DNA of 64,000 nt from Macrostomum hystrix. Its lineage: Eukaryota > Animalia > Platyhelminthes. The stretch covers positions 19,840,001 to 19,904,000 of the forward strand of contig CATNEN010000039.1 of NCBI GenBank assembly GCA_950097015.1, in the 5' to 3' direction. The notes under the pieces were generated by a model that was given only the letters and a program-made list of their open reading frames with translations, had not been told where the DNA came from and made no database searches. A program made the position numbers and the translations under genes. Positions 1 to 59,816 of the stretch are shown here, piece by piece; within the stretch, counting starts at the first letter, position 1; the number at the start of each line of letters is the position of its first letter.

Positions 1-2192
1 TCCATAGACTGCAGACAAAAGCGAGACGCGTTTGAGAACCATATAAATATGTGTTAATCGTTGAAGGACCACTGTACCGATGATGTACATATAGCAGAAC
101 TACTTAATACCAGCGCGCGTGCAGTGGTCCTTATAAACTTCATTAGCTACATGAATAAGTACAAAAACAATATCACAGGTGTGTTAGGGATTCTTGAGAA
201 GCTTTTATTGCCATCGAGGAGGCAATTTGCTGACCCAGCAGACACCGACTTTTATAGCCACTATTACATACTACTAGTTTCTTGTATCTATATATGCGCA
301 TAGCTTCAGCCAGAGCACATACACTCACTGTACACCGTGAGCGTTGGCCTCTATGTATGTAAACTCCATTTTGGCCTTTTTTATTGTGGTTACTAACAAC
401 AATACCAACTAGTTATTGCATTTGCGGCATCGTCGCGGATTTGTGTTTTAAGATCAACAGCTTTGTTATAGCTAGCGCTCCGTTTCTTGGAAGTGATTCA
501 AGATTCTTGGTAATCTTCAATTCCAGACATGAAATCATACATGAAGGCTGAAATACGACATGCATGTCTAATTTATTTGTCTTGAAAGCCCTGTAAAGCT
601 TTAAATGATGAAACGTTTTTTGGACGTGCTTTTAGAAGATAAACTACTATATTTATTGTATCGTACTCGTACAATGAGGTAAAGGGCTCTTCTTGAACTT
701 TAATCCTTATTAAAAGTTCGAGTTTTAGTAGTTTCATAAAACTGTGCTCATATGCTAATGATTTTCAGAGGTGCTAGGTAAAAAATATAACATTTGTTCC
801 ATATACAACCAGTTTCTATGAAATTGACTTCCCTTTCACAGGATGACCACACTTTTTGGTGCAAGCCATATGTAATGTATAGGCCTAGCTATATTAATTG
901 TCAATTATTAACTAATAATAATATTATGTAGTTAGTGAGTAGGCCTAACAATCTTCGTAACTTCTAAATATATATTTCTTATTGAACTGAAGTTTTATCA
1001 AGGAGTCACAAACTGAACATAATGTATTATTATTTAGGCCTAATTTAATTCGTAGCACTATTAATTGATTAAAAACAAAGAATAGAGCCTACACAATTTT
1101 TTTCTCTACTAAACACAATATTAATACGCCACATATACATTTGAACTGCTCTAGTGAAAAAGTCAGTGAATTGTTTGTTAGTAGGTGTATCTACAGGTAG
1201 GTGTATATTTTACTAAATATTTTGGTGCACACAGCAGATTTTTTAGCCCACATGGCAAAATTAGTGTATACAAAACCATTTAGCCACCTACATGGTATAA
1301 TTTGGTGCATATGACACATCTCAAATTTCTGTGTTTAATTTTTAAGTTTAATTTTTTAAGATATTGAATATTTTATGAGAACCTTACAATTATCTACACA
1401 TGTACCTTCAACAAAAAATACAATAAGATAACTAGGCCTACTGTCATTGCACAAAGATTCACATTTTCACATTTTGTAATAATGTGATTACATCTTACTA
1501 TATCACTATATTGAAGTACACTTTTTTGACAAATAACAAACAATTTAACAAATTATAATGTTTCTTACATGTAATTTTTGCTGCACACATTCTCTTTAGC
1601 ATCATTTTTGTATGGTGCATAGCAAAAAATCCAAAGAGTTTTGTTTTGTTTGCATATACTTCCTGACTATGATCAGCAAGCTATAAATTTTTCATTTCTG
1701 ATTAATGCTTGGGTTTAGCCTCTGAATCAGATTGCTTCTCTGAGCATGAAACACAAAATAAAAAAGAAAGAAAAATTCAAAAAAGAATTAAAAAAAAAAC
1801 AAAGTATTGGAAAGAATTAAGCAAAAATGTATTTTAACAGGTAGCTTATTATAACTATAAGAGTATATTTTTCGAAATTGAATTGACAAATAATTATTAT
1901 TTATTGCTTTTAAATCAAATGGCTGTTATAGAATTGGGTCAAAACTAAAAGCACCAAACATTATTAAAAAAGAAACAAGTTAGTTGTGTTATCACACATT
2001 TATTTTGTAGGTTAAATAGGTTAAGTCAATTATCTTAACTTAACTTTATTATAACAATTTCAGCTAAAACTTATTTGATACTACAAAGTAAGCAGAATAT
2101 TAGAAAAATTCAGTAAAATCTGCATTTGTGGCTCCCTAAGTCGTTAGGAAGGTGAATTTTTTTAAATATAGGATACTAAAGAAACAATAATT

Positions 2193-5100
2193 ATGGCTGT
2201 GCCTACCTTTCCCTCGTTAGAGACATTGTCTTTAAAGAGGGCCAGGTTTGAGCGTAAACCACTAGGCCCTCCCGAGGTCTATCCGCAGATGCCCAATCAA
2301 GATGAGGACAAACTTGATCAGGTAAGTTAAAGTTTTTATTCAGTTGCTTTGCATCTTCCGATCTCCCTGTTTCTATTTCCTATCATTCTGATTCTCTCCC
2401 ATCCTTCTGACTCTCCCTTTCCCATCCATCTGAATCTTCCTTTCCCATCCATCTGACTCTTCCTTTCCCACCCATCTGACTCTTCCTTTCCCATCCATCT
2501 GACTCTTCCTTTCCCACCCATCTGACACTTCCTTTCCCACCCATCTGACTCTTCCTTTCCCACCCATCTGACTCTTCCTTTCCCACCCATCTGACTCTTC
2601 CTTTCACACCCATCTGACTCTTCCTTTCCCACCCATCTGACTCTTCCTTTCCCATCCATCTGACTCTTCCTTTCCCATCCATCTGACTCTTCCTTTCCCA
2701 CCCATCTGACTCTTCCTTTCCCACCCATCTGACTCTTCCTTTCCCATCCATCTGACGCCCCCTTTGCCATCCGTTAGTTTTAAACTTTCCCATTACTCTG
2801 TCTGCATTATATTTTTCGTAAGTGTATTCAAACCTGTGTCACGTATCACTTAAATTCTCCAGGTCAATGTTCGCGAAGGCTTTAAAGATATTCTTCAGAA
2901 TCGTTTCAAAAGCACCAAACTAGAGGAGTATTCCTCGATAGCAAACGATTTCAAATTCTCTACCGACGAAGTGCTGAATGCGTTCAAGAAGATTGTCCTA
3001 CGCAAAGTCGAGGCCAATATAATGCCTGACACTAGTAAGAAACGTGGAGCTATCAGCAAAGACATTTCACTGCCCATGGCTGGCCGGACTGCTAGCAAAG
3101 TTGAAGAATGGTTCAAAGATTTCAAATCTGGCGAACAGCTGACTAAATTGTCCGCTAAAGTGCCGCTATCTGTGAAGAAGGAGGACATACTCAAGGAGGT
3201 ATTTAAGAATCGTCTGCCAGTGCATCGTGCCATCTGGTACCTGAAGGTTTGGTGGCAGTTTAGCAGCAGCTTATCCGAGTCGTCTAAAAAGAAAAAGCCA
3301 TTTGACGCACCGGAAGTTCAGGTAGGTTGTTTAGTCGATACGGCGATATCAACCCAGACTTACTATTGTCCTAGTACTGACCCAGTATGACTCATAGATC
3401 TAACCTGACCTATTGCTGACCTATTACTGACCTAGTATGACCCATAGATCTAACCTGACGCATTTTTACCTCGTACGGACCCAGAATTACTCATTGTTGA
3501 CCTACTACTGACCCACAATGACTCATAGATCTAACCTGACCCATGGCTGATCTATTGCTGACCTAGAATGACTTATAGATCTAACCTGACCCAATTTCGA
3601 CCTAGCACTGTTCCACAATGACTGATAGATCTACCTGACCCATTTTTGACCTCTTACTGACCCAATATGACTCATTGTTGACCTAGTACTGACATAGAAT
3701 GACTCATTGATTTACCTGACCTAATTTGGACCTATTACTGACCCTAGAATGACTCATATATCTACCTGACACATTCTTGACCTAGTTCTGACCCAGTATG
3801 ACTCATAGATCTACCTCACACATTGTTGACCTAGTTCTGACCCAGTATGTCTCATAGATCTACCTGACACATGGTTGACCTAGTTCTGACCCAGCATGAC
3901 TCCTAGATCTAACCTGACCCATTGCTGTTCTAGTAATGACCTAGAATGACTCATAGTTCTAACCTGACATATTGTTGACTTGGTACTCATCCATATGACT
4001 CAATATTTTGAACCACCGCTGACCACTGTTAACTAAGCGGGTCCACACAAAATATGAACCTCGCAGGTAAAAAACGACATCTGCACCCACCTGAAAGACA
4101 CTTTTGAAGCCGCTGTCGACGGTGCAGACGAAGACGTTCAAGACGAATGGAACTACGTCTGGGACCTGCTAGTAGCCATGATAGATCAGAGCCTATTCGA
4201 ACAGTTGGAAATCCTTCGCTGGGTCACGGAATTTGTTGAACGATGCCGCAAATCAGATCGTCAATTAGCTTTCCTATTGCCGCATCTATTAGCCGTTGTT
4301 CAATATTTCTCTGCATCAGAATTGGAAAGCAGAAGATTTCTAGTGGTCTGTTGCAATGTTGTACGCGATTTGGGCACCGTTATTGATCTACAATTCGCTC
4401 ACAGAGCACAGTGCTCACAGCACTATCAGATTCTTCTATCGGTCACTAGCCTGATTGTAACAGCTGTTTTGCGCTGTCCCGAGAGTGCAATCTGGTCCGC
4501 CAGCGTCAGCTGCGACTCGCCACTGTACGGCTCGCCTCTAGACCGGCTGCCCTGCAATCTACTCGGCCTTCCAGTTCAACCGGAACTGTTAGATCAATTG
4601 CGTCAGCTAATGCTGGAGATTACTAATCGAAGCGCTGAGGCTGAGCAGCATTGGACTAGGCGGGTGGATACACCGACTAGTTTGAAACTCATTGAAGTGC
4701 TGGAACATCTGGATAAGCACGACTATATGTCTGAGGATAATAAAGTAAGAATTCCAAGAATAGGATACTTGATTTCAACTTGAATTGCGGAAGGAATCGT
4801 AGCTAAAATTCTAGAAGGAATCGTAGCTAGAATCATAGAAGGAATCGTAGCTATGATTGTAACCAGAATCGCAGCAGGAATCGTAGCTAGAATCATAGAA
4901 GGAATCGTAGCTAGAATTCCAGGAGGAATCGTAGCTAGAATCATAGAAGGAATCGTAGCTAGAATCATAGAAGGAATCGTAGCTATGTTTGTAACCAGAA
5001 TCGCAGCAGGAATCGTAGCTAGAATCATAGAAGGAATCGTAGCTAGAATTCCAGGAGGAATCGTAGCTAGAATCATAGAAGGAATCGTAGCTAGAATCAT

Positions 5101-8100
5101 AGAAGGAATCGTAGCTATGATTGTAACCAGAATCGCAGCAGGAATCGTAGCTAGAATCATAGAAGGAATCGTAGCTTGAATTCTAGAAGGAATCGTAGCT
5201 AGAATCATAGAAGGAATCGTAGCTATGATTGTAACCAGAATCGCAGCAGGAATCGTAGCTAGAATCATAGAAGGAATCGTAGCTAGAATTCTAGAAGAAA
5301 TCGTAGCTATGATTGTAACCGGAATCGCAGCAGGAATCGTAGCTAGAATCATAGAAGGAATTGTAGCAATACTTGTAGGAGGAACTGTAGCTGAAATTCT
5401 GGCATGAATTGGATCTAGAATACAAGAGGGAATCGTAGCTAGAAAACCAACTGGAATCGTAGCTAGAAACCCAACTGGAATCGGAGCTAGAAACTTAACA
5501 GGAATCGGAGCTAGAAACCCAACTGGAATCGTAGCTAGATACCCAACTGGAATCGTAGCTAGAATTTAGGAATCGTAGCTAGAGTTTTAGGTATCGTAGC
5601 TAGAATTTTAGGAATTTTAGCAAGAATTTTAGCGGGAATCGCAGCTACAATCCGCCAAATCTAATCCCTATCTCAAACAGGAGGCAGTTCAGCAGGGTGA
5701 GGCGGAAATGCCACTACAGGACAAGGACATCATGCACAATCTGTTTACCAAGTGCTTCGATCGCGAGGATCCAGAAAGCGACCTCCGAGTGGCTTATTTC
5801 CTCTGCCAGTGGGCGGTTCATCCAAGTCGTGGCGGCTGTCATCGTCCAGTTGTAGCCGCCGTACTCATGGAGAAGCTTCGCCTATTGAATCGGGTCAGTC
5901 CAATCAGGCTGCACGATCAGCTGGTCAATTTCTTGAATAGTGACTCGGCGCCTAGGCAGGATCGCGACTCCGGCCCTGATTGTCAGGAATCGTTTCGCAA
6001 TCTGGTGGCCCTATTCGGCGAACTGATCGATCGGGAGATCTTCGATCACGATAGTTACGCTAGGTGAGATTGACGGTGAATTGGAATCCCAATTGAGGAA
6101 TGTTTGTTGCTAAATTAGGAGATATGGGTTTGTGAAATTATGGGTTCATTGGATTAGGGGATTTGGGTTATTTGGGTTGGGGGATTTAGGTTCATTGGAT
6201 TAGGGGATTTGGGTTCATTGGATTAGGGATTTGGGTTTAGAGATCCTGATGAAACATGGGTTCATAAAATCGGGAGATTTTGGTTTATGGGATTAGTAAG
6301 TTTGCTTTACGTGGTTGCATCAGGAAAATTTAGTTTATTCGATTTTGAAATATGGGTTTATGGATTAGGAGATTAGGGTTTGTGGGATTAAGAGTTTTAG
6401 GCTTGGAGTTAAGCAGATTTTGGTTCGGGAAGTAGGAGATTTGAGTTTGTGGATTAGGATATTTGAGTTTGTGGATTAGGAGATTTGAGCTTGTGGATTG
6501 GGAGATTTGAGCTTGTGGATTGGGAGATTTGAGTTTGTGGATTAGGAGATTTGAGTTTGTGGATTATGAGATTTGAGTTTGTGGATTAGGAGATTTGAGT
6601 TTGTGGATTGGGAGATTTGAGTTTGTGGATTGGGAGATTTGAGTTTGTGGATTAGGAGATTTGAGTTTGTGGATTAGGAGATTTGAGTTTGTGGATTAGG
6701 AGATTTGAGTTTGTGGATTGGGAGATTTGAGTTTGTGGATTGGGAGATTTGAGTTTGTGGATTAGGAGATTTGAGTTTGTGGATTAGGAGATTTGAGTTT
6801 GTGGATTAGGAGATTTTTTATTTTGTATCGTGTGCGAAAATAACTAGCTAAATATCCTTGCATAAAATCCAGGTACCTAATAGCTCACGACATTCTGAGC
6901 TCAGAGACGGCGCCTCTAGTATTCTCCGACACTGAGTACAGCTTGCCTAACCTGACTAAGCAGTCCAAGCACATTCAATATCTGGCTCATTTCCCCCTAC
7001 CAGCCGATGACACCTACGCACACGAGGCAAGCCAACGACTTCACATGCTCTATGGTGTTGGCAAAAGTGAAGAGGCTCTAAAACGATTTTTAAGGCGCCT
7101 AGTTCGCGAGGTTAGCCGACTATTCACTAAGAAGCACAACCTGGTCGATGCCAACACCGGCATGTACGTCAAGCAGCGTCGGGCTGGCAGCGTTGACGAG
7201 GACGCCGAGTTGAATGATATTCGCCGCCGTTTCTCTATGCTGACCTTCTGCGAGATGGAGCTGGTCACTGCCCAGGTAGTTTCTTTATTAGTTCCTGGGT
7301 TCTTTAGATTCTTCCCCTCTTCCCTGATCCTCAAGATTCTTCCCCTCTCGTCTGATCCTCAAGATTCTTCCCCTCTTACCTGATCCTCAAGATTCTTCCA
7401 CTCTTCCCTGATCCTCAAGATTCTTCCACTCTTCCCTGATCCTCAAGATTCTTCCACTCTTCCCTGATCCTCAAGATTCTTCCCCTCTCGTCTGATCCTC
7501 AAGATTCTTCCCCTCTTCCCTGATCCTCAAGATTCTTCCACTCTTCCCTGATCCTCAAGATTCTTCCACTCTTCCCTGATCCTCAAGATTCTTCCACTCT
7601 TCCCTGATCCTCAAGATTCTTCCACTCTTCCCTGATCCTCAAGATTCTTCCCCTCTCGTCTGATCCTCAAGATTCTTCCCCTCTTTCCTGATCCTCAAGA
7701 TTCTTCCCATCCTCTCTGATCGTCAAGATTTTCCTTTCCATGATTTCTTAACAACCTTGGGCCTATTCACATTTGCCCAATAAAAATTCGATTAAAAACC
7801 CAATAAAAATCCCAGGGCAAACGCTGTCTAATGGAGTCGTTGCGTCAATTCTACGAAGATCCCAATTGTAACATTCTGCCGTCGCCAACGCGCGTCCTAT
7901 TCCTAATGAACCTCGTAGAATTGTCTGGCAATCTCACCGGACTTATCTACTTTCTAGTTGAGATTTCTAATGGTATTCTTCGGTGAGAAATGTTTCATTG
8001 TAATTAAAAGTATTTGATTTTGAATTGACGCCAAATTGATACTAATAATTATAACAAAACAAACAACAACAGGGTGGAGGGCAAGCCTAGTCCGGGCTCT

Positions 8101-11100
8101 GGCACAGCAGCGTCCGCCGTCTCGGCCGAAGAACAGCAGCGCAATAATTTCTTGCGAATGTGGAGCAATAAAGTAGTACTCAGAGTACTTGGTTACCTGC
8201 GGCAGTATCAGGCTATACTCATGACTATGCCGGCTGAGATGCGAGTACTATTCTCTAATCTTGTTCGCACCAATGTTAAAAAAGTTGGCAATCCAGAGCA
8301 GTGCTCGTGCGCCGATCGTTGCACTTTAGCCTACCTGTTCGATCTGTATTCGCAATCGATTTCGGTCAAGGCCGGCTATCACAATATCTTCTCTAGGGCT
8401 AGGCCGAAATTGAAGCAGGCAATCTATAAGAAGATTGAAGCATTCGAAATTCCGCTGGCAATGTTTCCGCCAACTCTGATGAATCTGACCCATCCCAGTG
8501 TTGAAGAACTGCTATTGAACGACGAAGAGGAGAGAAAGCGCGCCAATTTCATGGACGAAAGGAAGAGAGCAAATTTCTTCTCATACTTTCTCTACAATGT
8601 GCTCATGTGCGACACGGATGAGAAGGTTAGTATTTTTGATCGACTACTACTCGTAATACTAATTTCGAGACAGATTATTCCTTCTATATCGCTATAATGT
8701 ATAAAAATTGTTATTTAAGACAGTCATCATCATGGTTACTTTTTGACTATTCATTTTGGTGACCTAAATTTATGACAATTTTCTCGACCGTCCTATCGAT
8801 TAGAGTGACCATGGATAGTTTATGACCGTTTGCTATAGGATACCATTCTTATGACAGTCGATTAAAGTGACCATGGATGGTTTATGACCGTTTTCTCCAG
8901 AATCCTATCCTTATGACAGTCGATTAGAGTGACCATGGATGGTTTATGACCGTTTTCTCCAGAATCCTATCCTTATGACAGTCGATTAAAGTGACCATGG
9001 ATGGTTTATGACCGTTTTCTCCAGAATCCTATCCTTATGACAGTCGATTAAAGTGACCATGGATGGTTTATGACCGTTTTCTCCAGAATCCTATCCTTAT
9101 GACAGTCGATTAGAGTGACCATGGATGGTTTATGACCGTTTTCTCCAGAATCCTATCCTTATGACAGTCGATTAAAGTGACCATGGATGGTTTATGACCG
9201 TTTTCTCCAGAATCCTATCCTTATGACAGTCGATTAGAGTGACCATGGATGGTTTATGACCGTTTTCTCCAGAATCCTATCCTTATGACAGTCGATTAGA
9301 GTGACCATGGATGGTTTATGACCGTTTTCTCAAGGATCCTATCCTTATGACCGTCGGTTAGAGTGACCATGGATAGTTTATGACCGTTTCCTATAGGATC
9401 CTATCCTTATGACAGTCGATTAGAGTGACTATGGATGGTTTATGACCCTTTTCTCAAGGATCCTATCCTTATGACAGTCGATTAGAGTGACCATGGATCG
9501 TTTAAAACCGTTTTCTTGAGGATCCTATCCTTATGACAGTCGATTAGAGTGACTATGGATAGTTTATGATCGTTTCCTATAGGATCCTATCCTTTGGACA
9601 GTCGATTAGAGTGACCATGGATGGTTTATGACCGTTTCCTATAGGATCCTATCCTTTGGACAGTCGATTAGAGTGACCATGGATGGTTTATGACCGTTTC
9701 CTATAGGATCCTATCCTTTGGACAGACGATTAGAGTGACCATGGATGGTTTATGACCGTTTCCTATAGGATCCTATCCTTTGGACAGTCGATTAGAGTGA
9801 CCATGGATGGTTTATGACCGTTTTCTATAGTATCCTGTCCTTATGACAGTCGATTAGAGTGACCAAGGATAGTTTATGACCGTTTCCTATAGGATCCTAT
9901 CCTTTGGACAGTCGATTAGAGTGATCATGAATGATTTATGACCGTTTACTTGAAGAAATTACTAAATGAGCATTTTATTACTGTGACTTATCAGCTGTAT
10001 TATTTTTATGTCTAAACTCTTATTTGACTTACACCAGGTGCTGAAGACTTGTATCGAAGCCTGCGAATGTACAACATTCTGCGCCCACCTGCCGCCTAGA
10101 TGGCTATGGATTTTGCGAGCCCTGTTAAACTCGGCATCTGGCAATAAGGAGCTAGAACCTGTCCTGCCGCAGATGCTGTTCGATCTAGTCTGTAATTGTC
10201 CGAATCTGGCTGAGAAACTGTCCGTACTGTGCGGCCTGCTTTTGTCTAGAACGTGTTTCACAATTGCCGACTTCTTAACCAATGTTCTATTTCCTGTGGT
10301 TAGCGATTTCCTAAAGAATCCCAGCGCCGAACCGTCGGCAAGATTGGCCATTCACGTCTTCTACCTGATTGTGACACTGAAACTGCCGTTGAAATCTTTG
10401 ACTGACAAGCTACTGCTTCGTGGCGCCGTTGTTGATAAGATATCTACTAATTCGTTAAATTTCTTCTTCAAGGTATGTTTACTGAAGTACCACCCGAATT
10501 TATAGCTCTAATTAGTCACATTTTCCTTATTTATTTCAGTCTCTAATTAGTCACATTCCCTTATTTATTTCAGTCTCTAATTAGTCACATTCCCTTATTT
10601 ATTTAAGTCTCTAATTAGTCACAATAGCCTTATTTATTTAAGTCTCTAATTAGTCACCTTTCACTCACCCATTTCAGTCTCTAATTAGTCACCTTTCACT
10701 CACCTATTTCAGTCTCTAATTTGTCACCTTTCACTCATCTATTTCAGTCTCTAATTAGTCACCTTTTACTCACCCATTTCAGTCTCTAATTTGTCACAAT
10801 TCCCTTATCTATTTCAGTCTATAATTAGTCATCTTACCCTTAACTATTTCAGTCTCTAATTAGTCACATTTTCCTTATCTATTTCAGTCTCTAATTAGAC
10901 ACCTTTCACTTACATATTTAAGTCTCTAATTAGTCACCTTTCACTCACCTATTTCAGTCTCTAATTAGTCACCTTCCTGTTATCTTTTTCAGTCTATAAT
11001 TATAAACTTTTTTCCTTATCTATTTCAGTCTCAAATTTGTTACATTTCCCGTTTACCTATTTTAGTCCCTGATTAGTGACCTATCCCGTATCTATTTCAG

Positions 11101-17100: not shown

Positions 17101-17227
17101 TCAAGGAACTTCGGCCAACGCTATGCACCCTCAGCATCAACTCCAGCACCAGCTCCAGCATTCACATTCGCAGCAGCAGCAGCCTCCGCCTCCACCTGAT
17201 TATTCGGTTTACAGCAGTCACCAACAC

Positions 17228-17259
<32 letters not shown>

Positions 17260-19480: not shown

Positions 19481-19631
19481 TGTTGGGATAACGCTTTTAA
19501 AGTTATGATTAGACTGTTACAGGTTAGGATTTCTATAAGAATAGGTAATTTAAATAAAACCACAAATCTTAATTTTATCCCTCATCTATTTAGCTCCCTC
19601 AGACACCAAATCCCAACCAGTCGAACTGACA

Positions 19632-22080: not shown

Positions 22081-22399
22081 TTTATAACTCTCTCTATATT
22101 GCACGAGTAAATTATATTCTTATGTAAAATTGCAGCATTTCTTTTAATTTCCTATTTATTTTCTTAGTATTTGTCACAGTCTGCATTTGAAAGTTTCGAG
22201 GGAAAAAATTGTGCTTTGAATTTAGAAGTCTAATTAAGTTAAAAGTCTTCGTAAATGTCAAATTTATTGCATTTGTCTCGCGTTTCAATTCTATTATCAA
22301 AATAGCATTCAATATTGGTGCTTTAATTTAATAAACGTTTCAAATAATGTTTAATTATTAATGAAAAAAAGTTAATGATTTATTTTTTATTTTTTTCAC

Positions 22400-22481
22400 T
22401 TTTTTAGATTTCTTTTGTCTTTACTTTCTACTGTAAGTAATCGATCTCATTATATCAGTTCATAATTTAACTTTTTTCCAG
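22400..22481 (+). promoter_or_regulatory. Intergenic cassette: TTTTAG / 25 nt / TCTACT|GTAAGTA / TTCCAG acceptor before WDR36
   Basis: AG at 22406-7, GT at 22433, AG at 22480-1, ATG at 22492. PRIM1 candidate AATAAA at 22330-22335. Confidence 0.55.
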
Positions 22482-22491
22482 CTATTTTAAA

Positions 22492-31345: not shown

Positions 31346-31350
31346 ACCTA

Positions 31351-31857: not shown

Positions 31858-31932
31858 TCTTCGCAACTAAGCACGTTTAGCAACTGAACTGTTCATTGAA
31901 TCAGTTAACAGTTATAGGCGTCTAAGGTTGCC

Positions 31933-42889: not shown

Positions 42890-42907
42890 CAAATTCTTAA
42901 ATTGCAG
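42890..42907 (+). promoter_or_regulatory. Candidate trans-splice acceptor of XPF (TTCTTAAATTGCAG)
   Basis: AG at 42906-7 is directly followed in phase 0 by TCT ACA GAC GGC TTA CTG GAG TAC GAA. An in-frame TAA lies just upstream. Confidence 0.65.
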
Positions 42908-45900: not shown

Positions 45901-48900
45901 CAGGTTGACTCAGGGATCTGACTCAGGTTGCTTCAGGGATCTGACTCAGGTTAACTCAGGGATCTGACTCGGGTTGACTCCGGGATCTGACTCATTTGTT
46001 TCAGGGATCTGACTCATTTGTTTCAGGGATCTGTCTCAGGTTGACTCCGGGATCTGACTCGGGTTGCTTCAGGGCTCTGACTCATTTTGCTTCAGAGCTC
46101 TGACTCATTTTGCTTCAGGGATCTGACTCATTTGCTTCAGGGATCTGACTCATTTGCTTCAGGGATCTGACTCGGGTTAACTCAGGGCTCAGAGTGTCAT
46201 GATTCTTTCATTTTGAAAAGCGTTCTCAATTGCATCGCAGGAGGACCCAGCCGCATTTCACCGTCGCGTCGCCTCGGTCATCAGCAGCGAGAAAGCATTC
46301 GGCGCCAACTCCGGCTGGCTTTTTCTGGCCGAAGCTGACCGACTCCTGTCAGCCAGCAAGGCCAGACTTGGCGGCTCAGCCACTGGTCCAGCTTCCGGAT
46401 ACGAGATTCCGCCTAAGTGGCTGTCCTGTCGAGCTATTCTGAAGGAAATTGAGCAGCAGCAAGATGAACTGCCTTCAAGGTGTGAGACTTGCTTTAAGGC
46501 ACTGTTAGTTTGATTTCTTAGAGTTCTTTGAAGTTTATTTAGTCTATAGGATTGACCCCCTCTCTCTAGTGTTGACCCCCTCTCAGTGTTGGGTTGGCCC
46601 CCTCTCAGTGTAGGATTGACCCCCTCTCTCTAGGATTGACCCCCTCTCAGTGTAGGGTTGACCCCCTCTCAGTGTAGGGTTGACCCCCTCTCAGTGTAGG
46701 ATTGACTCCCTCTCAGTGTAGGATTGACCCCCTCTCAGTGTAGGATTGACCCCCTCTCTCTAGGATTGACCCCCTCTCAGTGTAGGGTTGACCCCCTCTC
46801 AGTGTAGGATTGACCCCCTCTCTCTAGAATTGACCCCCCCTCTCTCTAGAATTGACCCCTGTCTCTCTAGAATTGACCCCGTCTTCTGTAAAATTGACCG
46901 CAACGCTGTTCGGTTGACTCCATCTAATTTATTTCCTAATCAATTTTCTTAGGAAAATTTATTTATTTATTATTGACTTGCAATTGTAGCGGCTCAAATT
47001 CTGAGCAGCCGAACAGGCGTCAGCTCCGCACTCTGGTCCTGGTTCACGACGCAGCCACTCAGCGTCAATTATTTGCCTACCTAACTGTAGGCGCCGAGGC
47101 AGCGTTTGCCGCCGACAAGCAAAACAATTCCGATAATTCCGATTCGGAATCTGATGTCGGCGTTAAAACTGCCGCCGCCAACAACAACAACAACAAAAAG
47201 AAGAAGATTGCAAACAGGCAACGGAAACAAAATAAAAAGCCGACCGCACTAACACTCACCCAGATGCTGCGACCGCAGCAGGCGGAAGACCCCAAAGCTG
47301 AAACCGACGATGACGCTGATGAAGCAATTGACGAATCTAAAATCGACGAAATTGATTTAAAAAGACGATTCCCAAGTATTCGCTTATTCGAAGTCAATAA
47401 TAATACGAGCGATACTGTTTGTCGGCATGCAATATTTGCGATTAAAAACTATTTCGCTGGCGTCGGTCAAACCCGACGTCAGGCGTCGTCGATCGGACAT
47501 CAGCAGGCTTTGCCGCAGCTGCTAGACTGTTGGCAGCCGCATTGTGTACTGCTGTACGATGCAGATTCGACCAGCGTACGCCAGCTGGAGGTGTACAGTC
47601 TATGTCGAAGGCGTGTTAATAATCAACAGCCGAGTCCGCTGCTCATCTATTTCTTTGTCTACGAGAGTAGCGTAGAGGAGCAGCGCTACCTGACCCAGCT
47701 GCGCAAGGAGAAAGACGCTTTCGAATTTCTTATACGCGAACGCAGCGTCGCCGTGGTTACCAGCGAACCGGTTGTCAAGGGCGATTTAGCGCCGGCTGAA
47801 GAGCTAGAACCTGACATTGGTGGCATTGGAACTGTACCTGCCAGCCAAACTGCCGAGCAGCATCAGGTGTGATTGGATGAAGACTGGGATAAAACTCAGG
47901 GAAGAATATGATAGAACTCAGTTGGATAGAATATGATAGAACTCAGTTGAATAGAGTAGGATAGAACTCAGTTGAATAGAGTAGGATAGAACTCAGTTGG
48001 ATAGAATATGATAGAACTCAGTTGAATAGAGTAGGATAGAACTCAGTTGGATAGAATATGATAGAACTCAGTAGTATAGAACAGGATAGAACTCAGTAGG
48101 ATAGAACAGGATAAAATGCGGTTTCAGTTCGGAATCATATCTCCATCGTTGTCATCATTGTCGATCTTCTCGCCCCGTCGCCGTTCAGGTGATCGTAGAC
48201 GTTCGCGAGTTTCGCAGCGAGCTGCCATGCCTACTGCACAGGCGAGGCATCACCATCTTGCCTGTGACCATCGATATTGGCGACTACGTTCTCACTCCTG
48301 AGATCTGCGTTGAGCGAAAGTCTGTCAGCGATTTGATTGGCTCGTTAAACAGCGGACGGCTCTATAATCAGGTTAGGAAAATTTGATTCGTAACTGCTAA
48401 TGATCCTATACCAACTACCATCTTTGATCATCAATATACCCCCCTATAGTCTATGATCCTTTTCATTCGTCTTTCGACACTTCACATGATCAATGACTCT
48501 ATTTTATCATAATGACCCTCTTCTCTGATCAATGACCCTCTTCTACAATCAATGACCCTCTCTATGATCAATGACCCTCTTCTATGATCAATGACCCTCT
48601 TCTATGATCAATGACCCTCTTTTACAATCACTGACCCTTTTCTACAATCAATGATCCTCTTCTACAATCAATGACCCTCTTCTATGATCAATGACCCTCT
48701 TCTATGATCAATGACCCTCTTCTATGATCAATGACGCTCTCTATGATCAATAACCCTCTTCTACAATCAATGACCCTCTTCTATGATCAATGACCCTCTC
48801 TATGATCAATAACCCTCTTCTACAATCAATGACCCTCTTCTATGATCAATGACCCTCTCTATGATCAATGACCCTCTTCTATGATCAATGACCCCCTTCT

Positions 48901-49747
48901 ATGATCAATGACCCTCTTCTATGATCGATGACCATCTTCCATCATAAATGCCTTTTTTCTGCAATTGATGAGCATCTTCCATGATGAATGACCCTCTTTC
49001 GTGACCAGTCAATGACCCTCATGATCAATGACCCGCTCTCGTCATCGCTGAAGTCATTCGTGGCTCTCGCACCCTGCTTGCCAGGTCGTGAACATGACCC
49101 AGCACTATCGCACGCCGGCACTTCTCATTGAATTCGACGCAGAGCGCAGCGGTTTCGCGCTCTTTCACGGCCGCGCCGCCATGAGCTCCGAGCTGAACTC
49201 GTCCGACGTGATTTCCCGCCTCAGCCTGCTGACTCTGCACTTTCCACAGCTGCGCATTCTGTGGAGCCCGGCGCCTCACGCAACCGCCGAACTGTTCCAC
49301 GACCTCAAACGCGGCCGACCCCAGCCGCAGCTCCAACTGCTGCCGTCTGTCACCGCCGTCGTAGCTAACGACGCTGACACGGGCGTCGCTTTAGAAACAT
49401 TCGACGAACAGACTTCGTTGTCGTCGTCGGCGACCTCGTCGGCCGCAATGCGCCATGTGGCTCGCTCGATGCTGCTGAGAATGCCTGGCGTCGGGCATCG
49501 CAATGTCCGCTCGCTTGTCAAGGCGGCCGGTGGCAGCTTCGCCGGACTCTGCCAACTCGGCGTTGGCGAACTGCGCGAAGCTCTCGGCCAACGCGAGGCC
49601 GCTGAACGGCTACACGAGTTTCTTCACACTGACGGGCGCCGGGTCCAGCAACAGCAGCAGCAGCAGCCTAGCAGGGTAGGCACCGCATCGCGCAGACCCA
49701 ACATTCAACTGGCTACCAAACTGCCCACTGGATACAAGAAGAAGTGA
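42908..49747 (+). CDS. ERCC4: DNA repair endonuclease XPF, 7 exons; no genomic start codon in exon 1
   Basis: Exons 42908-43333, 43956-44153, 45371-45640, 46241-46479, 46990-47866, 48189-48371, 49085-49747. Motifs [67 protein letters not shown], nuclease [37 protein letters not shown], and HhH (MPGVG). Confidence 0.95.
43338..43930. repeat. 22-bp minisatellite, XPF intron 1
   Basis: Unit GACCCAGCTATAGATCCCCTAT. Confidence 0.93.
44325..45260. repeat. 24-bp minisatellite, XPF intron 2
   Basis: Unit GGGATCGGAAAGTCAGGATGGGAT. Confidence 0.95.
45631..46190. repeat. 23-bp minisatellite, XPF intron 3, starting inside exon 3
   Basis: Unit CTGACTCAGGTTGACTCAGGGAT. Confidence 0.93.
46548..46900. repeat. 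~22-bp minisatellite, XPF intron 4
   Basis: Unit GATTGACCCCCTCTCAGTGTAG. Confidence 0.9.
47900..48115. repeat. ~25-bp minisatellite, XPF intron 5
   Basis: Unit GATAGAACTCAGTTGAATAGAGTAG. Confidence 0.9.
48490..49035. repeat. 20-bp minisatellite, XPF intron 6
   Basis: Unit TCAATGACCCTCTTCTATGA. Confidence 0.92.
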
Positions 49748-50089
49748 CGAAACAAATCTCTGACCCTGGTGCGTGAAGCAGCGCCACAAAATTCCCAATT
49801 TGCTGCTAATTAATTCACTGAAACTTATTGTTTTCAACGCAAATGTCTGCATTTTACTACTGAATATTTTGTAATTAGTAGTGTATCGTTTTTGTAATAA
49901 TAGTTATGGATTATTGTAACAATAACTGTCGACTTTAAATTCTGACTTGTCTTAATAAAAGAAATTTTCAATTAGCTCGTTTATTTTTCATTCACGCTAT
50001 GCTGAAAAAATGAAACACCGTTTTTTATCACGGTTCATTGTTGATATTTGGGTTTCAAGATCACACAAAACGGCAGTGAAGTCAGTGAG

Positions 50090-50888
50090 TTTAAAGTAGA
50101 CTATTGGTCAGTGAGTGTACATAGACTATTGGTCAGTGAGTGTACATAGACTACTGGTCACTGAGTGTACATAGACTACTGGTCAGTGAGTGTACATAGA
50201 CTATTGGTCACTGAGTGTACATAGACTATTGGTCAGTGAGTGTACATAGACTATTGGTCAGTGAGTGTACATAGACTACTGGTCACTGAGTGTACATAGA
50301 CTATTGGTCAGTGAGTGTACATAGACTACTGGTCACTGAGTGTACATAGACTATTGGTCAGTGAGTGTACATAGACTATTGGTCACTGAGTGTACATAGA
50401 CTATTGGTCAGTGAGTGTACATAGACTACTGGTCACTGAGTGTACATAGACTATTGGTCAGTGAGTGTACATAGACTATTGGTCACTGAGTGTACATAGA
50501 CTATTGGTCAGTGAGTGTACATAGACTACTGGTCACTGAGTGTACATAGACTATTGGTCAGTGAGTGTACATAGACTATTGGTCAGTGAGTGTACATAGA
50601 CTATTGGTCAGTGAGTGTACATAGACTACTGGTCACTGAGTGTACATAGACTATTGGTCAGTGAGTGTACATAGACTATTGGTCACTGAGTGTACATAGA
50701 CTATTGGTCAGTGAGTGTACATAGACTACTGGTCACTGAGTGTACATAGACTACTGGTCACTGAGTGTACATAGACTTTATTGGTCACTGAGTGTACATA
50801 GACTATTGGTCAGTGAGTGTACATAGACTACTGGTCACTGAGTGTACATAGACTTTATTGGTCAGTGAGTGTACATAGACTATTGGTC
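50090..50888. repeat. 25-bp minisatellite between XPF and NAGS
   Basis: Unit CTATTGGTCAGTGAGTGTACATAGA. Confidence 0.95.
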
Positions 50889-51511
50889 GGAGTTTAACTC
50901 AACTGAGTATTCGCCGGTTAGCAACAAGTTCATTACTCTCCTATCCTCAGATTTAGACTGTTCAGTAAGTTGCAGATAATTTGGCTCTAGATCCAGACCA
51001 AATCTAGTCAAATCCTTGATATCTTTATCCAGTTTAGTCTCCATAGTTTTCAGATTGACTAGGCATGGTTCAGCAGTAATAGACTCCGATAGACTCTTTG
51101 AGCTGTTGTCCAACGATTTTTGCGGTACAGTTGCTTCTAGACCGTCGGGCGATGACTTTGACTGGTCTTTCGCTGAGGTCATGTTCCTCTGCCTTCTGAT
51201 CAGATCTCGGTTTATGCGGGATAATTTCCTCAAACGGGACTTGAGTCTATGGCTACAGCAGTAATTTATAGGAGTAAATCGATTTTTTGAAAGGTGAATA
51301 AATACAAGCACTAATGAACTGCGTTGCTGGGTTGGACAGATTTGTAGTTAATTAAATCACTAGCCTAGTCACTTCCTGTCTGCATTGACTAGGGCTTGGT
51401 TGGTAAAAGGTTGGGGCATGTACTTTTAGATTGCCCATTGACTGACTGTAATTAGTATGCCCTTAAAATATGCAGAGCTATAGTAGCTATGAATACAACG
51501 ATAGCCTGCCA

Positions 51512-53187
51512 CGTTTCTTCAGGTTGCAGCCCCCATTCCACCGTCTCTTCAGGTTGCAGCCCCCATTCCACCGTCTCTTCAGTTTGCAACCCCCATTCCA
51601 CCGTCTGTTCAGGTTGCAGCCCCCATTCCACCGTCTCTCCAGGTTGCAGCCCCCATTCCACCGTCTCTTCAGGTTGCAACCCCCATTCCACCGTCTCTTC
51701 AGGTTGCAGCCCCCATTCCACCGTCTCTTCAGGTTGCAACCTCCATTCCACCGTCTCTTCAGGTTGCAACCTCCATTCCTCCGTCTCTTCAGGTTGCAAC
51801 CCCCATTCCACCGTCTCTTCAGGTTGCAACCCCCATTCCACCGTCTCTTCAGGTTGCAACCCCCATTCCACCGTCTCTTCAGGTTGCAACCTCCATTCCA
51901 CCGTCTCTTCAGGTTGCAACCCCCATTCCACCGTCTCTTCAGGTTGCAGCCCCCATTCCACCGTCTCTTCAGGTTGCAGCCCCCATTCCACCGTCTCTTC
52001 AGGTTGCAACCCCCATTCCACCGTCTCTTCAGGTTGCAGCCCCCATTCCACCGTCTCTTCAGGTTGCAACCTCCATTCCACCGTCTCTTCAGGTTGCAAC
52101 CTCCATTCCTCCGTCTCTTCAGGTTGCAACCCCCATTCCACCGTCTCTTCAGGTTGCAACCTCCATTCCACCGTCTCTTCAGGTTGCAACCCCCATTCCA
52201 CCGTCTCTTCAGGTTGCAACCTCCATTCCACCGTCTCTTCAGGTTGCAACCTCCATTCCACCTTTTCTTCAGGTTGCAGCCCCCATTCCACCGTCTCTTC
52301 AGGTTGCAACCTCCATTCCACCGTCTCTTCAGGTTGCAACCTCCATTCCTCCGTCTCTTCAGGTTGCAACCTCCATTCCACCGTCTCTTCAGGTTGCAAC
52401 CCCCATTCCACCGTCTCTTCAGGTTGCAACCCCCATTCCACCGTCTCTTCAGCTTGCAAACCCCATTCCACCGTCTCTTCAGGTTGCAACCCCCATTCCA
52501 CCGTCTCTTCAGGTTGCAACCTCCATTCCACCGTCTCTTCAGGTTGCAACCTCCATTCCACCTTTTCTTCAGGTTGCAGCCCCCATTCCACCGTCTCTTC
52601 AGGTTGCAACCTCCATTCCACCGTCTCTTCAGGTTGCAACCTCCATTCCTCCGTCTCTTCAGGTTGCAACCTCCATTCCACCGTCTCTTCAGGTTGCAAC
52701 CCCCATTCCACCGTCTCTTCAGGTTGCAACCTCCATTCCACCGTCTCTTCAGGTTGCAACCCCCATTCCACCGTCTCTTCAGCTTGCAACCCCCATTCCA
52801 CCGTCTCTTCAGGTTGCAACCCCCATTCCACCGTCTCTTCAGGTTGCAACCTCCATTCCACCGTCTCTTCAGGTTGCAACCCCCATTCCACCGTCTCTTC
52901 AGCTTGCAAACCCCATTCCACCGTCTCTTCAGGTTGCAACCCCCATTCCACCGTCTCTTCAGGTTGCAACCTCCATTCCACCGTCTCTTCAGGTTGCAAC
53001 CTCCATTCCACCGTCTCTTCAGGTTGCAACCCCCATTCCACCGTCTCTTCAGCTTGCAAACCCCATTCCACCGTCTCTTCAGGTTGCAACCCCCATTCCA
53101 CCGTCTCTTCAGGTTGCAACCTCCATTCCACCGTCTCTTCAGGTTGCAACCTCCATTCCACCGTCTCTTCAGCTTGCAACCTCCATT
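51512..53187. repeat. 30-bp minisatellite between XPF and NAGS
   Basis: Unit CCGTCTCTTCAGGTTGCAACCCCCATTCCA. Confidence 0.97.
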
Positions 53188-53699
53188 GTCCGTTTCTTCA
53201 GGGTTTCTTCAGTCTGCTTTTCCCCATATTTTCATGTCGATTAAAGTGAGCAATATAATTTAGCTATTTACGATTTTAGAATTAAATAACCCTGTTTCTA
53301 TCCCCGCTATTGTTTTAATTCACAGATCGCATCCCTAACTAGTTAGATATATTTCCCATATGCTCTGTTTTCGTCTGCTTTCAGTCCTCGGGGTAAATAT
53401 TGAGTCTAAACAGCCTTTCAAAGCTAATTCCCAAAGTTTTCTAGATCAAATCATTAGCTTTAGCCATATAAGGCTGACTCATTTCCCAATGACAGCGCGT
53501 GTTTCAGTGGTGTCCCTGCATAGTGTATTGGATCGCAGAGGATATAGAAAATTCCAGAAGACTTAGCTGAGGGCTTGCTTACAACTGGTCTAGCCCACTG
53601 AGTCTAGTCATAAATAGCCCCGTTTTTTTAACTTAAGTCAGGTTTTAAGCTTCCAAAGCTTTAAGAAGTCAAGTTGCAGATAAGAACTGACCGCTGAGC

Positions 53700-56580
53700 A
53701 TGCTGGTTCGCTCAGCAGCTTCCATCATCGCCAGAACTTTAAATAGGCGTCGCCAATTGTCCTCGTATCTGTTCAGCGGCAACAGCTCGCCTTGGAACCG
53801 ACTGACCAGTCCGGAGGTTCCAATCGTCCCGTCTGCGGCGGCAGCTGCTCTAGCTGACAGTCCCGAAGATCCAGAACGCTTAGTTGGCACAGCCGGCCTT
53901 CGCAAATTTGTTGAGAACATCACCAAGAAGCCAAAGGAGGCCAGGCTATGGCTGAAGTACTTCAAGTATTTCTCGGCGAAGTCACCCGGCCGGGCGTTCG
54001 CTGTGATGCGCCTGGCGCCAGACGTCTTCAACGACACTCGCGAGCTTCGACGACTGGCCTGGTCCACGGCCTTCCTGTTTGAGCACGGCCTCGTGTCCGC
54101 GCTGATCTGTCGGATGGCCGGCGACGAGGACTGGCGCCGGGCTGAGCTGCTGAGCCAGCTGCTGTCCAGACACGGCGTACCGTCGCGCGTCCTGCTGATG
54201 AACGGTCTGGCAGATGCGGAGGACTCCGTCGGCTGCCTGTCGAAGCAACAGGGCGAGAATCTGCTGGCTTTGGCCCAGGTCTGCGTACCGATCGTCTGCT
54301 GTCCGGTGCTCGAGTCGACAGCCACCAACACCACGTCATGCTTCGCTGCAGATGCGGCCGATGGCAGATCTTCGGGTGCGGCTGACGCTGTCGACGCCTC
54401 TCTGATGCGTATCTGCCGCTCGCTGCGACCACTGAAAGTCATGCTGCTTAGCGGCCAAAGCGGACTGCCAGATCCGAGGGGCCGAATCATGAGCGACATT
54501 CATTTGCCAGGTGAGACTAGCAACTAGGCTTGGCTAGTTTACTAGTTACATGTCACTAGACCAACAATGACGGCACAAAACGTTCACAAAAACACCAATC
54601 ACAACGTTAAAAATCTCCCAAAAGTAACTAAACTTAATGAAACGTCATAAACCTACCTTACAATCCTGCAACAACGTCACCAACATTCAACAACATCGCA
54701 AACCTACAAAAACTTCAAAAACCAACAACAACGTCGCAAACATACTACAACGTCAAAAACCTACAACAACGTCACAAACCTACAACAACGTCACAAACCT
54801 ACAACAACGTCACAAACCTGCAACAACGTCGCAAACCTACAACAACGTCACAAACCTACAACAACGTCACAAGCCTACAACAACGTCGCAAACCTACAAC
54901 AACGTCACAAACCTACAACAACGTCACAAACCTACAACAACGTCACAAACCTACAACAACGTCGCAAACCTACAACAACGTCACAAACCTACAACAACGT
55001 CACAAACCTACAACAACGTCACAAACCTACAACAACGTCACAAACCTACAACAACGTCACAAACCTACAACAACGTCACAAACCTGCAACAACGTCACAA
55101 GCCTACAACAACGTCACAAACCTACAACAACGTCACAAACCTACAACAACGTCACAAACCTACAACAACGTCGCAAACCTACAACAACGTCACAAACCTA
55201 CAACAACGTCACAAACCTACAACAACGTCACAAACCTACAACAACGTCGCAAACCTACAACAACGTCGCAAACCTACAACAACGTCACAAACCTACAACA
55301 ACGTCACAAACCTACAACAACGTCACAAACCCACGTCGTAAAACTTGCCACAACATCACAAAAATTTTACTAACAAATCACAAAAGCTACCAAATCGGTA
55401 AAAAGCATGTCAACTATAGCACACACTAATAAAACAAAAAAATGCGTAAACTTTACCAAATAAAAACTAAAAAAACTCTTCTTTTTCTGATTCCAGGTGA
55501 TCTTGCGCCACTCGTAGGCAGCAGCAGTCATCTGAGCCACGAGCAGCGTCGACTCCTGCGTACCTCAGCGGGTTTATTAAACTGCTTATCAAGCGAAAGC
55601 CAGGTGATACTAACTAGCGCTGGCTGCGTTGTTCAAGAACTTTTCACCCATCACGGCTCGGGGACAATGGTCCGGTCTAGCGAACGCATCGTTCAACAAT
55701 GCACCCTGAAGGGTGTCAATCGGGCGGCCCTGTCGGCCCTATTAAATCGCTCATTTGTTAAAACACTGCGCGAAGACTGGTACACCCGGGTCGAGGGTCT
55801 CGTTGAGTCTGTCTACGTTAGCGAGAACTACAGCGCCGCCGCAGTGATACTTCGCCTGCCCAGCATTCGAGTTCCGTACTTAGACAAGATTGCGGTAAGA
55901 TCGCAAGACTGTTCAGTTCTTGAACAGGAATACATTTGTGTAACAGAAAATTACTCTAAAAGCTAGGCTATAATTCTTATTAGAATTTTGAAATAAAGTC
56001 TAATCGGAAGGATTTATATCTAAAAGGAAGGCTTCATATCTAACAGGACGGTTTCATATCTAACAGGACGGTTTCATATCTAACAGAAAGGCTTCATATC
56101 TAACCGGAAGGTTTCATATCTAACAGGAAGGCTTTATATCTAACAGGAAGGATTTATATCTAACAGGAAGGTTTCATATCTAACAGGAATGTTTCATATC
56201 TAACAGGAAGGTTTCATATCTAACAGGAAGGTTTCATATCTAACAGGAATGTTTCATATCTAACAGGAAAGTAAAATATCTAACGAGACTGCTCATATTT
56301 ATCATATTTATTGCTCAAACAGGTCAGCGAAGCTGCTCAAGGCTCCGGCTTAGCTGTGATGCTGTGGAGTCGCATTGTGGAAGACTATCCCGCACTGTTC
56401 TGGCGCGCCAGATACACAAACAAGGCTGCATTGGCCTGGTACAGCAGCCTAGCCCAGGGTAGCTGGAAGGCCGAAGCTGATTGGACAATATTCTGGTATG
56501 GCCTAAGCAATAGCGGCCTACTTGGCGCCCTCATCGACTATGCGGCTAAGAAACCTGCCGATTTTATTGATCCTCACTGA
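53700..56580 (+). CDS. NAGS: N-acetylglutamate synthase-like (AAK-like + GNAT/DUF619), probable mitochondrial presequence, 3 exons
   Basis: Exons 53700-54510, 55497-55894, 56323-56580. Arg/Ser-rich N-terminus without acidic residues; EARLWLKYF, ELFTHHGSGT, YVSENY.AAAV, PYLDK.AV..AQGSG..LW..YPALFWRAR..N..WY, WTIFWYG. Confidence 0.85.
54660..55335. repeat. 19-bp minisatellite, NAGS intron 1
   Basis: Unit ACAACAACGTCACAAACCT. Confidence 0.95.
56020..56285. repeat. 20-bp minisatellite, NAGS intron 2
   Basis: Unit TAACAGGAAGGTTTCATATC. Confidence 0.93.
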
Positions 56581-59062: not shown

Positions 59063-59630
59063 GGAAGACTTTAAGGGATTAAGGGAGACTGGGTGATTAA
59101 TGAATAGTATGAGATTAAGGAGTGCATGAGATATTGAAGGCGCTTTGGAAAAAGAGAAGAGAGAAAACAAGTTGAGTAGTCACAGTGAGTAGGTCTGTGA
59201 GCCTTGAGGCAGAGAACAAATAATGAACGAATGAGTAGCGATGGTCGACTGAAAGAATGTGAGAGTGGCAGTAAAGATTGCAAATGTAGTCAATTGCTCT
59301 CAGTTAAAGCAATTCATTTTCAAACTCTATTTACCATTGCTAAATAGGCGTGCGCACAACTGGCAGCTTGAAGGCAGAATATTTAACATACAGTCGCAAT
59401 GCTAAATTGAAATATTTCTTCTTTCTTTAGAAATTTGCTTGCCCTGGTGTACAAACGAAGCAGAACAGTGCTCGGATAGCATAACCTACTCAATTCTGTG
59501 CGGAGTATAGAAGTGAAGCAAACTCCTATGTTAATTTATTTTGGCACATTTCACAGTGTCGTGCCATCGTGCCTACTTCCGATTCTAGTTTTGATTAATT
59601 TGATATTTTAGTGTTATTTGTCTTCTGCGC

Positions 59631-59816
59631 ATGGCTTCCTATAATTTGAAGCAGACTTTCCCGCCGCCGCAGCCGGAAACGGTTGAAAATGCCGGAGGAG
59701 CTTCTTGGCCGAGATTTCAGCAGCTGAATCTTGGCTCGCCGCAACAAAGGCTTAATTATCCTCAAATTATCCTCGATGACAAAGACTCGCCTGTGACCGC
59801 CATGACCGAGGAGGAG
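59631..59816 (+). CDS. Probable first coding exon of a further + strand gene (product uncertain; weak resemblance to SSUH2-like proteins)
   Basis: ATG at 59631, 62 codons with exon-like composition, ending at a strong phase-0 donor GAG|GTGAGT and followed by a minisatellite-filled intron. No downstream exon was identified in the window. Confidence 0.55.

Follow-up and report, generated by a model that had tools for sequence, protein, structure and literature searches.

A head-to-tail array of housekeeping genes in Macrostomum hystrix, probably expressed as two tandem spliced-leader operons

A 64,000-nucleotide stretch of the genome of the flatworm Macrostomum hystrix (contig C39, positions 19840001 to 19904000; hereafter, the window) carries MED12, PRIM1, WDR36, BORCS5, EEFSEC, XPF/ERCC4, NAGS, and the first exon of an eighth gene (gene 8), all head to tail on the plus strand. 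We consider here whether these genes are expressed as polycistronic units resolved by spliced-leader (SL) trans-splicing, as an initial annotation of the window had proposed. Genome searches covered the 220-Mb assembly (42 contigs); exons were searched singly, and those of BORCS5 were joined solely to find its stop codon. The claimed run of eight consecutive plus-strand genes is borne out by the first exon of gene 8 and by Pfam matches in plus-strand exons of the other seven genes: Med12 and Med12-LCEWAV (MED12), DNA_primase_S (PRIM1), two WDR36/Utp21 propellers (WDR36), LOH1CR12 (BORCS5), GTP_EFTU, euk_SelB_III, and eEFSec_4th (EEFSEC), ERCC4 (XPF), and the NAT domain of N-acetylglutamate synthase (NAGS). 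The coding pieces of the window are as follows.

2193-17326, plus strand: MED12 coding span, many exons, the last, Q-rich exon putative (Pfam; collinear human MED12 matches up to 13175)
19632-21663, plus strand: PRIM1 (DNA primase small subunit) coding span (Pfam)
22491-30093, plus strand: WDR36/UTP21 coding span (Pfam)
31933-33479, plus strand: BORCS5 coding sequence, 283 amino acids (aa) (stop located on joined exons; Pfam)
34620-41062, plus strand: EEFSEC (selenocysteine elongation factor) coding span (Pfam; collinear with M. lignano Mlig023716g1)
42908-49747, plus strand: XPF/ERCC4 coding span (Pfam; collinear matches to M. lignano Mlig023716g3 and to two fused models, P0268 and P0134)
53700-56580, plus strand: NAGS coding span (Pfam NAT; collinear with M. 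lignano fused model P0134 over its NAGS part)
59631-59816, plus strand: gene 8 first coding exon, with a GT donor at 59817 (acceptor AG at 59610-59611)
13578-15640, minus strand: retroelement fragment (reverse transcriptase, RNase H; RVT_1, RNase_H) in a MED12 intron (Pfam)
37340-37838, minus strand: retroelement fragment (reverse transcriptase related) in an EEFSEC intron

The coding pieces of the minus strand are thus solely intronic retroelement fragments, and no gene of the opposite strand stands between any two neighbors of the plus-strand series.

The SL of M. lignano is 35 nt long and ends in ATG (PMC8629364). A conserved leader and about 7,000 trans-spliced genes have been reported for M. 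hystrix, in a genome paper that gives trans-splicing rates and never uses the word operon (PMC10468722). The 35-nt M. lignano leader has 23 exact copies in the M. hystrix genome and 149 with ≤3 mismatches, compared with 0 for the reversed control. One exact copy (L001) and a copy within an 11.6-kb repeat (L030) are followed by GTAAGACACCG (GTAAG), an Sm-like site, ATTTTTAG, and hairpins, which marks a real leader RNA gene. The second of these (C17:14300-14700) is a leader gene linked to the ribosomal DNA (rDNA). Dispersed copies (L002, L003, L004, and L031) run into nonintron sequence and look like retrocopies of trans-spliced mRNAs. Ten extra nucleotides, GCC(G/A)TAAAGA, stand upstream of the 35-mer both in dispersed copies and in the rDNA-linked gene, so the mature leader may be about 45 nt long rather than 35. 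A variant leader RNA gene lies in a 927-bp tandem array (L029, C39:12667600-12669900); its exon ends in ...GACTCTCTTTTTTGCATG and is followed by the same GTAAGACACCG donor, and an Sm-like site is also present.

Every gene of the window has a plausible trans-splice acceptor a short distance upstream of its coding start. At every acceptor position listed in the initial annotation there is indeed the G of an AG preceded by a pyrimidine tract, and the three AATAAA signals that it placed at 22330, 33564, and 49954 are present. By chance alone, a start would be expected to have an AG no more than 75 nt away, so only the acceptors tested by RNA, those of BORCS5 and EEFSEC, count as evidence. The acceptors, with the poly(A) signal of PRIM1 (slash, splice junction), are as follows.

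2170-2171, plus strand: predicted MED12 acceptor AG (sequence)
19619-19620, plus strand: predicted PRIM1 acceptor (aaccAG/TCGAAC), 11 nt before the ATG (sequence)
22330-22335, plus strand: PRIM1 AATAAA, about 150 nt before the WDR36 acceptor
22480-22481, plus strand: predicted WDR36 acceptor (ttttccAG/CTATTT), which fits the M. lignano [T/C]TNCAG trans-splice motif (sequence)
31856-31857, plus strand: BORCS5 acceptor AG (RNA contigs)
34585-34586, plus strand: EEFSEC acceptor AG, in use (RNA contigs, four runs)
42906-42907, plus strand: predicted XPF acceptor (aaattgcAG/TCTACA) (sequence)
53678-53679, plus strand: predicted NAGS acceptor (gttgcAG/ATAAGA) (sequence)
59610-59611, plus strand: predicted gene 8 acceptor AG (sequence)

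A further AATAAA, at 19553, precedes the PRIM1 acceptor directly past a 1.1-kb minisatellite. When the leader AUG is joined in silico to the acceptors, the frame that it opens closes after 3 to 11 codons in PRIM1, WDR36, BORCS5, EEFSEC, NAGS, and gene 8, and at the MED12 acceptor it stays open, in frame, adding 8 residues. The XPF frame opens right at its acceptor and has no ATG of its own, so that the AUG of the leader would have to start it and appears to be the sole possible XPF start. In NCBI, the XPF proteins of M. lignano are labeled partial and likewise begin without Met.

RNA evidence came from four runs of one 2020 study, which held 43 to 47% of the words of window positions 29880-35080 and whose contigs are spliced, which identifies the runs as RNA. 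The transcribed features and the one silent stretch of this region are as follows.

30094-31000, plus strand: WDR36 3′ untranslated region (UTR), through a 0.6-kb minisatellite, with ATTAAA at 30908 and 31003 (RNA contigs)
31858-33657, plus strand: BORCS5 mRNA, with 3′ ends at 33601-33657 (spliced contigs, four runs)
33708-34055, plus strand: unique AT-rich stretch with zero RNA coverage (four runs)

The BORCS5 contigs join 31857-32593 to 33289-33601/33657 across a GT..AG intron of 695 nt (32594-33288), and in all four runs they carry 22 further letters 5′ of 31857 that are not found in the stretch. Similarly, EEFSEC contigs of the four runs begin at 34586 with 22 or 23 extra nongenomic 5′ letters. 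This position settles a choice left open in the initial annotation, which gave the EEFSEC acceptor as 34586/34590: the contigs begin at the former, and the latter is not the one used. Both alignments start on the G of the AG, which fits an added sequence ending in G. With 31-letter words and about 7,000 genes, a contig running into a shared leader should become unique only after 7 or 8 gene-specific letters and should thus keep about 23 leader letters. An extension of equal length in two genes and four runs points to a shared leader rather than to a gene-specific upstream exon, and we infer that the extensions are the SL. No gene-specific 5′ exon occurs at BORCS5 or EEFSEC in the contigs of the four runs.

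Farther upstream, a WDR36 contig reaches 30223, within the minisatellite, depth persists through the repeat, and a further piece covers 30749-30997, which places the minisatellite within the WDR36 3′ UTR. Upstream of the BORCS5 acceptor, at 31446-31793, depth is about 2 to 4 in two runs, compared with about 22 for the mRNA. The BORCS5-EEFSEC spacer has no RNA coverage at 33708-34055 in any of the four runs; coverage resumes at 34056, with perfect-match contigs again at 34252-34461. As to read-through RNA across the spacers, which had been named as a test of polycistrony, coverage is thin between WDR36 and BORCS5 and nil across 33708-34055. The BORCS5-EEFSEC region is unique in the genome save for a tRNA-like piece of 60 to 80 nt, and the silent stretch is a candidate boundary or promoter region between two units. 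The tRNA-like repeat fragment lies at 34275-34355, upstream of EEFSEC.

The proposed synteny check in a related species gave orthologues in the same order in M. lignano. BORCS5 exon 1 matches BOX15_Mlig003993g4 (PAA81253, on a 545,794-nt contig) and Mlig020509g3 (PAA67706) with 73% identity, and Mlig020509.g1 is PRIM1, annotated as trans-spliced and marked {TRANSSPLICED} (supplementary table, PMC5816591). EEFSEC corresponds to Mlig023716g1 (PAA93091) and Mlig023716g4 (PAA81252), and XPF corresponds to Mlig023716g3 (PAA93090) and Mlig023716g5 (PAA81251), both genes being collinear with the window exons by tblastn. PAA81251, PAA81252, and PAA81253 are consecutive on one contig, in the order XPF, EEFSEC, BORCS5. 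Older M. lignano models fuse EEFSEC to XPF (P0268 and P0159) and XPF to NAGS (P0134, collinear with 43019-56463). By these sequence matches, the order from PRIM1 through NAGS is kept in M. lignano, WDR36 not being among the retrieved orthologues.

In M. lignano, one unit-name prefix is common to PRIM1 and BORCS5 (Mlig020509) and another to EEFSEC and XPF (Mlig023716). The M. lignano “transcriptional units” are often multigene precursors that are divided into genes where leader and poly(A) sites lie, and clustering at 95% identity gives units a common name prefix (PMC5730564, PMC5816591); as we read the published methods, unrelated genes with one prefix would stem from a single assembled precursor. 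The break between the two M. lignano unit names coincides with the M. hystrix coverage hole between BORCS5 and EEFSEC. The suffix gN was considered as a position within a unit and rejected, as three copies of a NAGS paralogue are g1 to g3 of one prefix, and it is a running number. BOX15_Mlig021343 was rejected as the NAGS orthologue; it is a more distant paralogue next to a glutamate receptor gene. This second, more divergent M. lignano NAGS (Mlig021343; P0135 and P0154) adjoins an ionotropic glutamate receptor gene, and no such receptor was found within 20 kb downstream of M. hystrix NAGS. In the paper supplements searched for Mlig003993, Mlig020509, WDR36, EEFSEC, ERCC4, and MED12, only the PRIM1 row was found, and a full-text literature search for Mlig003993 returned nothing.

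The stop-to-start gaps are as initially annotated, and much of their length is repetitive.

MED12-PRIM1: 2305 nt from stop to start, 913 nt nonrepeat
PRIM1-WDR36: 827 nt from stop to start, 529 nt nonrepeat
WDR36-BORCS5: 1839 nt from stop to start, 1243 nt nonrepeat
BORCS5-EEFSEC: 1140 nt from stop to start, 1140 nt nonrepeat
EEFSEC-XPF: 1845 nt from stop to start, 599 nt nonrepeat, EEFSEC 3′ UTR included
XPF-NAGS: 3952 nt from stop to start, 1395 nt nonrepeat, XPF 3′ end unmapped
NAGS-gene 8: 3050 nt from stop to start, 853 nt nonrepeat

Tandem repeats make up 43% of the window and 0 to 68% of individual gaps. Nearly every intron, 3′ UTR, and spacer has a distinct minisatellite of its own (period of 15 to 62 nt, 0.2 to 2.7 kb). 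The gaps had been described as largely minisatellite or short interspersed element (SINE); the minisatellites are confirmed, and the “SINE” is a multicopy tRNA-like inverted-repeat element.

31087-31488, strand undefined: tRNA-like inverted-repeat element (foldback or SINE pair), very many copies, in the WDR36-BORCS5 spacer

Its RNA word depth is in the thousands; ARAGORN found no tRNA genes and no intact tRNA in the spacers.

Operons in M. lignano have been defined as same-strand neighbors of which the second is trans-spliced, at a repeat-subtracted distance of <1 kb; the mode of these distances is about 100 nt, 15% of genes belong to operons by this definition, and operons comprise nine genes at most (PMC8629364). 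The authors also warn that assembled units break within repeat-rich spacers (PMC8629364). In the window, about 130 to 150 nt separate the PRIM1 AATAAA from the WDR36 acceptor, ≤860 nt separate the mapped WDR36 3′ UTR from BORCS5 (about 450 nt minus the inverted-repeat element), 929 to 985 nt separate the mapped BORCS5 3′ ends from the EEFSEC acceptor, and the 599 nonrepeat nt between EEFSEC and XPF include the 3′ UTR. All four distances are below 1 kb; that between XPF and NAGS exceeds it on the stop-to-start figure, which is 1395 nt with the XPF 3′ end unmapped. Distances that look too long for an operon therefore shrink to about 0.1 to 1 kb once repeats and UTRs are subtracted. Only PRIM1-WDR36 is as short as the intercistronic region of about 100 nt typical of nematodes, the others being 0.4 to 1.4 kb with repeats removed.

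These observations are best explained, with a probability of roughly 0.58, by two tandem SL operons, PRIM1-WDR36-BORCS5 and EEFSEC-XPF, within the head-to-tail array of housekeeping genes; the first unit may begin with MED12, and the second may run on into NAGS. RNA polymerase II would transcribe through several genes, the upstream mRNA would be freed by cleavage and polyadenylation, and the downstream mRNA would be freed, capped, and given its 5′ end by splicing of the 35-nt leader to an AG a few to 75 nt before the start codon. The AUG at the end of the leader would supply XPF with its start codon and, in other genes, would open a miniature open reading frame of 3 to 11 codons. Minisatellites and the SINE-like element would have inflated the 3′ UTRs and spacers. 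Trans-splicing at these genes, as first proposed, is supported by the leader gene, the two leader-length extensions, the AUG-less XPF, and the annotation of the PRIM1 orthologue. From this evidence as a whole, we infer that the genes of each unit are co-transcribed in M. hystrix, that one unit ends and the next begins between BORCS5 and EEFSEC, and that acceptors other than those of these two genes are in use.

The initial annotation had left the choice between one and two polycistronic units, and the M. lignano unit names together with the M. hystrix coverage hole fit two better than one. A single operon of eight genes and 57 kb, transcribed from one promoter upstream of 2170 and resolved by trans-splicing, would agree with the use of one strand throughout without an opposite-strand host gene, with a plausible acceptor at every gene, with repeat-subtracted gaps that are all ≤1.4 kb, and with the conserved order BORCS5-EEFSEC-XPF-NAGS; operons of up to nine genes have been reported in M. 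lignano (PMC8629364). However, a change of unit name between BORCS5 and EEFSEC divides the M. lignano cluster into two units or more, the RNA of all four runs has its hole at the same place, the XPF-NAGS spacer of about 1.4 kb of nonrepeat sequence exceeds the 1-kb limit, and no evidence ties MED12 or gene 8 to the rest, so that a unit of this size is improbable and the least likely of the readings considered. It is also unlikely, though less so, that each gene is transcribed independently from a promoter in its own spacer and through a short outron, with the leader trimming the 5′ end as in nematode genes that receive SL1 only, and with a gene order that reflects the ordinary synteny of congeners. 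About 60% of trans-spliced M. lignano genes lie outside operons, nonrepeat spacers of 0.5 to 1.4 kb could hold promoters, coverage resumes at 34056, upstream of EEFSEC, after the silent stretch, strong 5′ splice sites near acceptors (described below) could mark promoter-proximal regions, and transcriptional units assembled from short reads can merge neighbors. Against independent promoters stand the PRIM1 AATAAA only about 150 nt from the WDR36 acceptor, the wholly leader-dependent start of XPF behind a gap of 599 nonrepeat nt that includes the EEFSEC 3′ UTR, the precursor-transcript names shared in M. lignano by PRIM1 and BORCS5 and by EEFSEC and XPF, and BORCS5 and EEFSEC contigs free of any gene-specific 5′ exon.

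Several points weigh against the two-operon explanation. That a shared prefix means a shared precursor is an interpretation of a methods text, and the unit names come from short-read assembly in another species, in which read-through may merge neighbors. The WDR36-BORCS5 and BORCS5-EEFSEC spacers extend for about 0.85 to 0.95 kb past the mapped 3′ ends, which leaves room for promoters. The 5′ extensions are assigned to the leader by their position and length. A single-leader system lacks an SL2-like marker by which to tell downstream operon genes from ones that have an outron and a promoter of their own, and contigs do not reveal where transcription begins, so independent promoters keep some probability; gaps in contig coverage are weak evidence. 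Finally, strong 5′ splice-site motifs stand in three of the spacers.

These motifs are as follows (slash, donor junction).

22427-22439, plus strand: TCTACT/GTAAGTA, 49 nt upstream of the WDR36 acceptor
31566-31578, plus strand: TCTACT/GTAAGTA, second copy
31809-31821, plus strand: TCTACT/GTAAGTA, third copy, 43 nt upstream of the BORCS5 acceptor
33695-33709, plus strand: two GTAAGTAG copies shortly past the BORCS5 3′ ends (gCTACTttaGTAAGTAGTAAGTAG)

TCTACTGTAAGTA has three exact copies in the window, all on the plus strand, and 159 in the genome, compared with 12 for the reversed control. Five of the six plus-strand GTAAGTA occurrences lie in the spacers after PRIM1, WDR36, and BORCS5 (binomial P of about 0.001, against a baseline in which spacers are 18% of nonrepeat sequence), and true intron donors in the window rarely carry this perfect U1 match. 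The core of the motif, CTACT-GTA-AGTAG, is a 5-bp inverted repeat centered on the donor. The genomic copies stand in varied contexts, some of them within repeat families, and a “cassette” with an upstream TTTTAG acceptor was rejected as a general feature, with TTTTAG at 6 of the 159 genomic copies. No contig joins the donors at 31572 and 31815 to the BORCS5 acceptor, where joints with sides of ≥20 letters would be reported. Given its sense orientation, its five spacer copies, and a roughly 13- to 20-fold genome-wide enrichment, we raise the rather doubtful suggestion that CTACT/GTAAGTAG is a functional intercistronic RNA element. If the motif binds U1 within the spacer, one possibility is a landing site for the U1 small nuclear ribonucleoprotein (snRNP) that protects or defines the downstream cistron after 3′-end cleavage of the upstream one, which would be the flatworm equivalent of the Ur element of nematodes; alternatively, the motif may act as a donor close to a promoter or as a decoy. 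It is the sole element of the locus that might lead to something new.

The arrangement itself is already known in animals and in Macrostomum, and the orthologous units have already been named in M. lignano. The SL operons of that species (Wudarski et al. 2017, PMC5730564; Ustyantsev & Berezikov 2021, PMC8629364) share with the present locus the identical 35-nt leader with its terminal AUG, the placement of conserved housekeeping and stem-cell genes on one strand, [T/C]TNCAG acceptors, and repeat-inflated spacers, and the orthologues of the genes described here belong to the named units Mlig020509/Mlig003993 and Mlig023716. The present case differs in concerning another species, in which minisatellites peculiar to the locus make up most of the spacers and 3′ UTRs and co-transcription is probable. 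The SL2 operons of Caenorhabditis elegans likewise combine unrelated housekeeping genes in polycistronic precursors resolved by 3′-end formation and trans-splicing, and their intercistronic, 5′ splice-site-like Ur element resembles the strong 5′ splice-site motif in three M. hystrix spacers, but spacers are about 100 nt in C. elegans and 0.1 to 1 kb or more here. To our knowledge, no specialized downstream leader marks operon genes in Macrostomum, unlike SL2 in C. elegans. Donation of an AUG by the leader is a feature of flatworms. The operons of Schistosoma, Ciona, and Oikopleura are similar in having one leader class for single genes and operons alike and in the trans-splicing of downstream genes; those of Ciona and Oikopleura have almost no intercistronic spacer, whereas M. 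hystrix spacers are long and repeat rich. The locus would provide an example of SL operons conserved across species in a second Macrostomum species, whose genome paper left operons unanalyzed. Such operons would tolerate kilobases of minisatellite in UTRs and spacers, and raw distance thresholds would therefore miss them, and the repair gene XPF would have its sole start codon donated by the leader. In practical terms, the findings may be of use for the annotation of M. hystrix and for the choice of spacers in M. lignano, where transgenesis exists.

With regard to other parts of the window, human MED12 (8tq2_C) residues 912 to 1024, 1074 to 1177, and 1527 to 1652 match window positions 8029-8694, 9987-10502 (a weak match), and 12684-13175, respectively, with the order kept, and no match was found for the putative last exon of the M. 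hystrix gene, which is Q rich (15785-17323). A plus-strand open stretch at 37269-37856 was rejected as an EEFSEC exon, as it is the antisense of the intronic retroelement fragment. In 40 kb of flanking sequence, Pfam matched only a DDE transposase among the open frames. A 346-aa open stretch on the plus strand, 6.4 to 7.4 kb past the end of the window, has no Pfam or Protein Data Bank (PDB) sequence match; it may be part of gene 8 or of a further co-oriented gene, and its language-model features are like those of Mab-21 (cGAS-like) proteins (score of 0.92), which we offer as a lead only.

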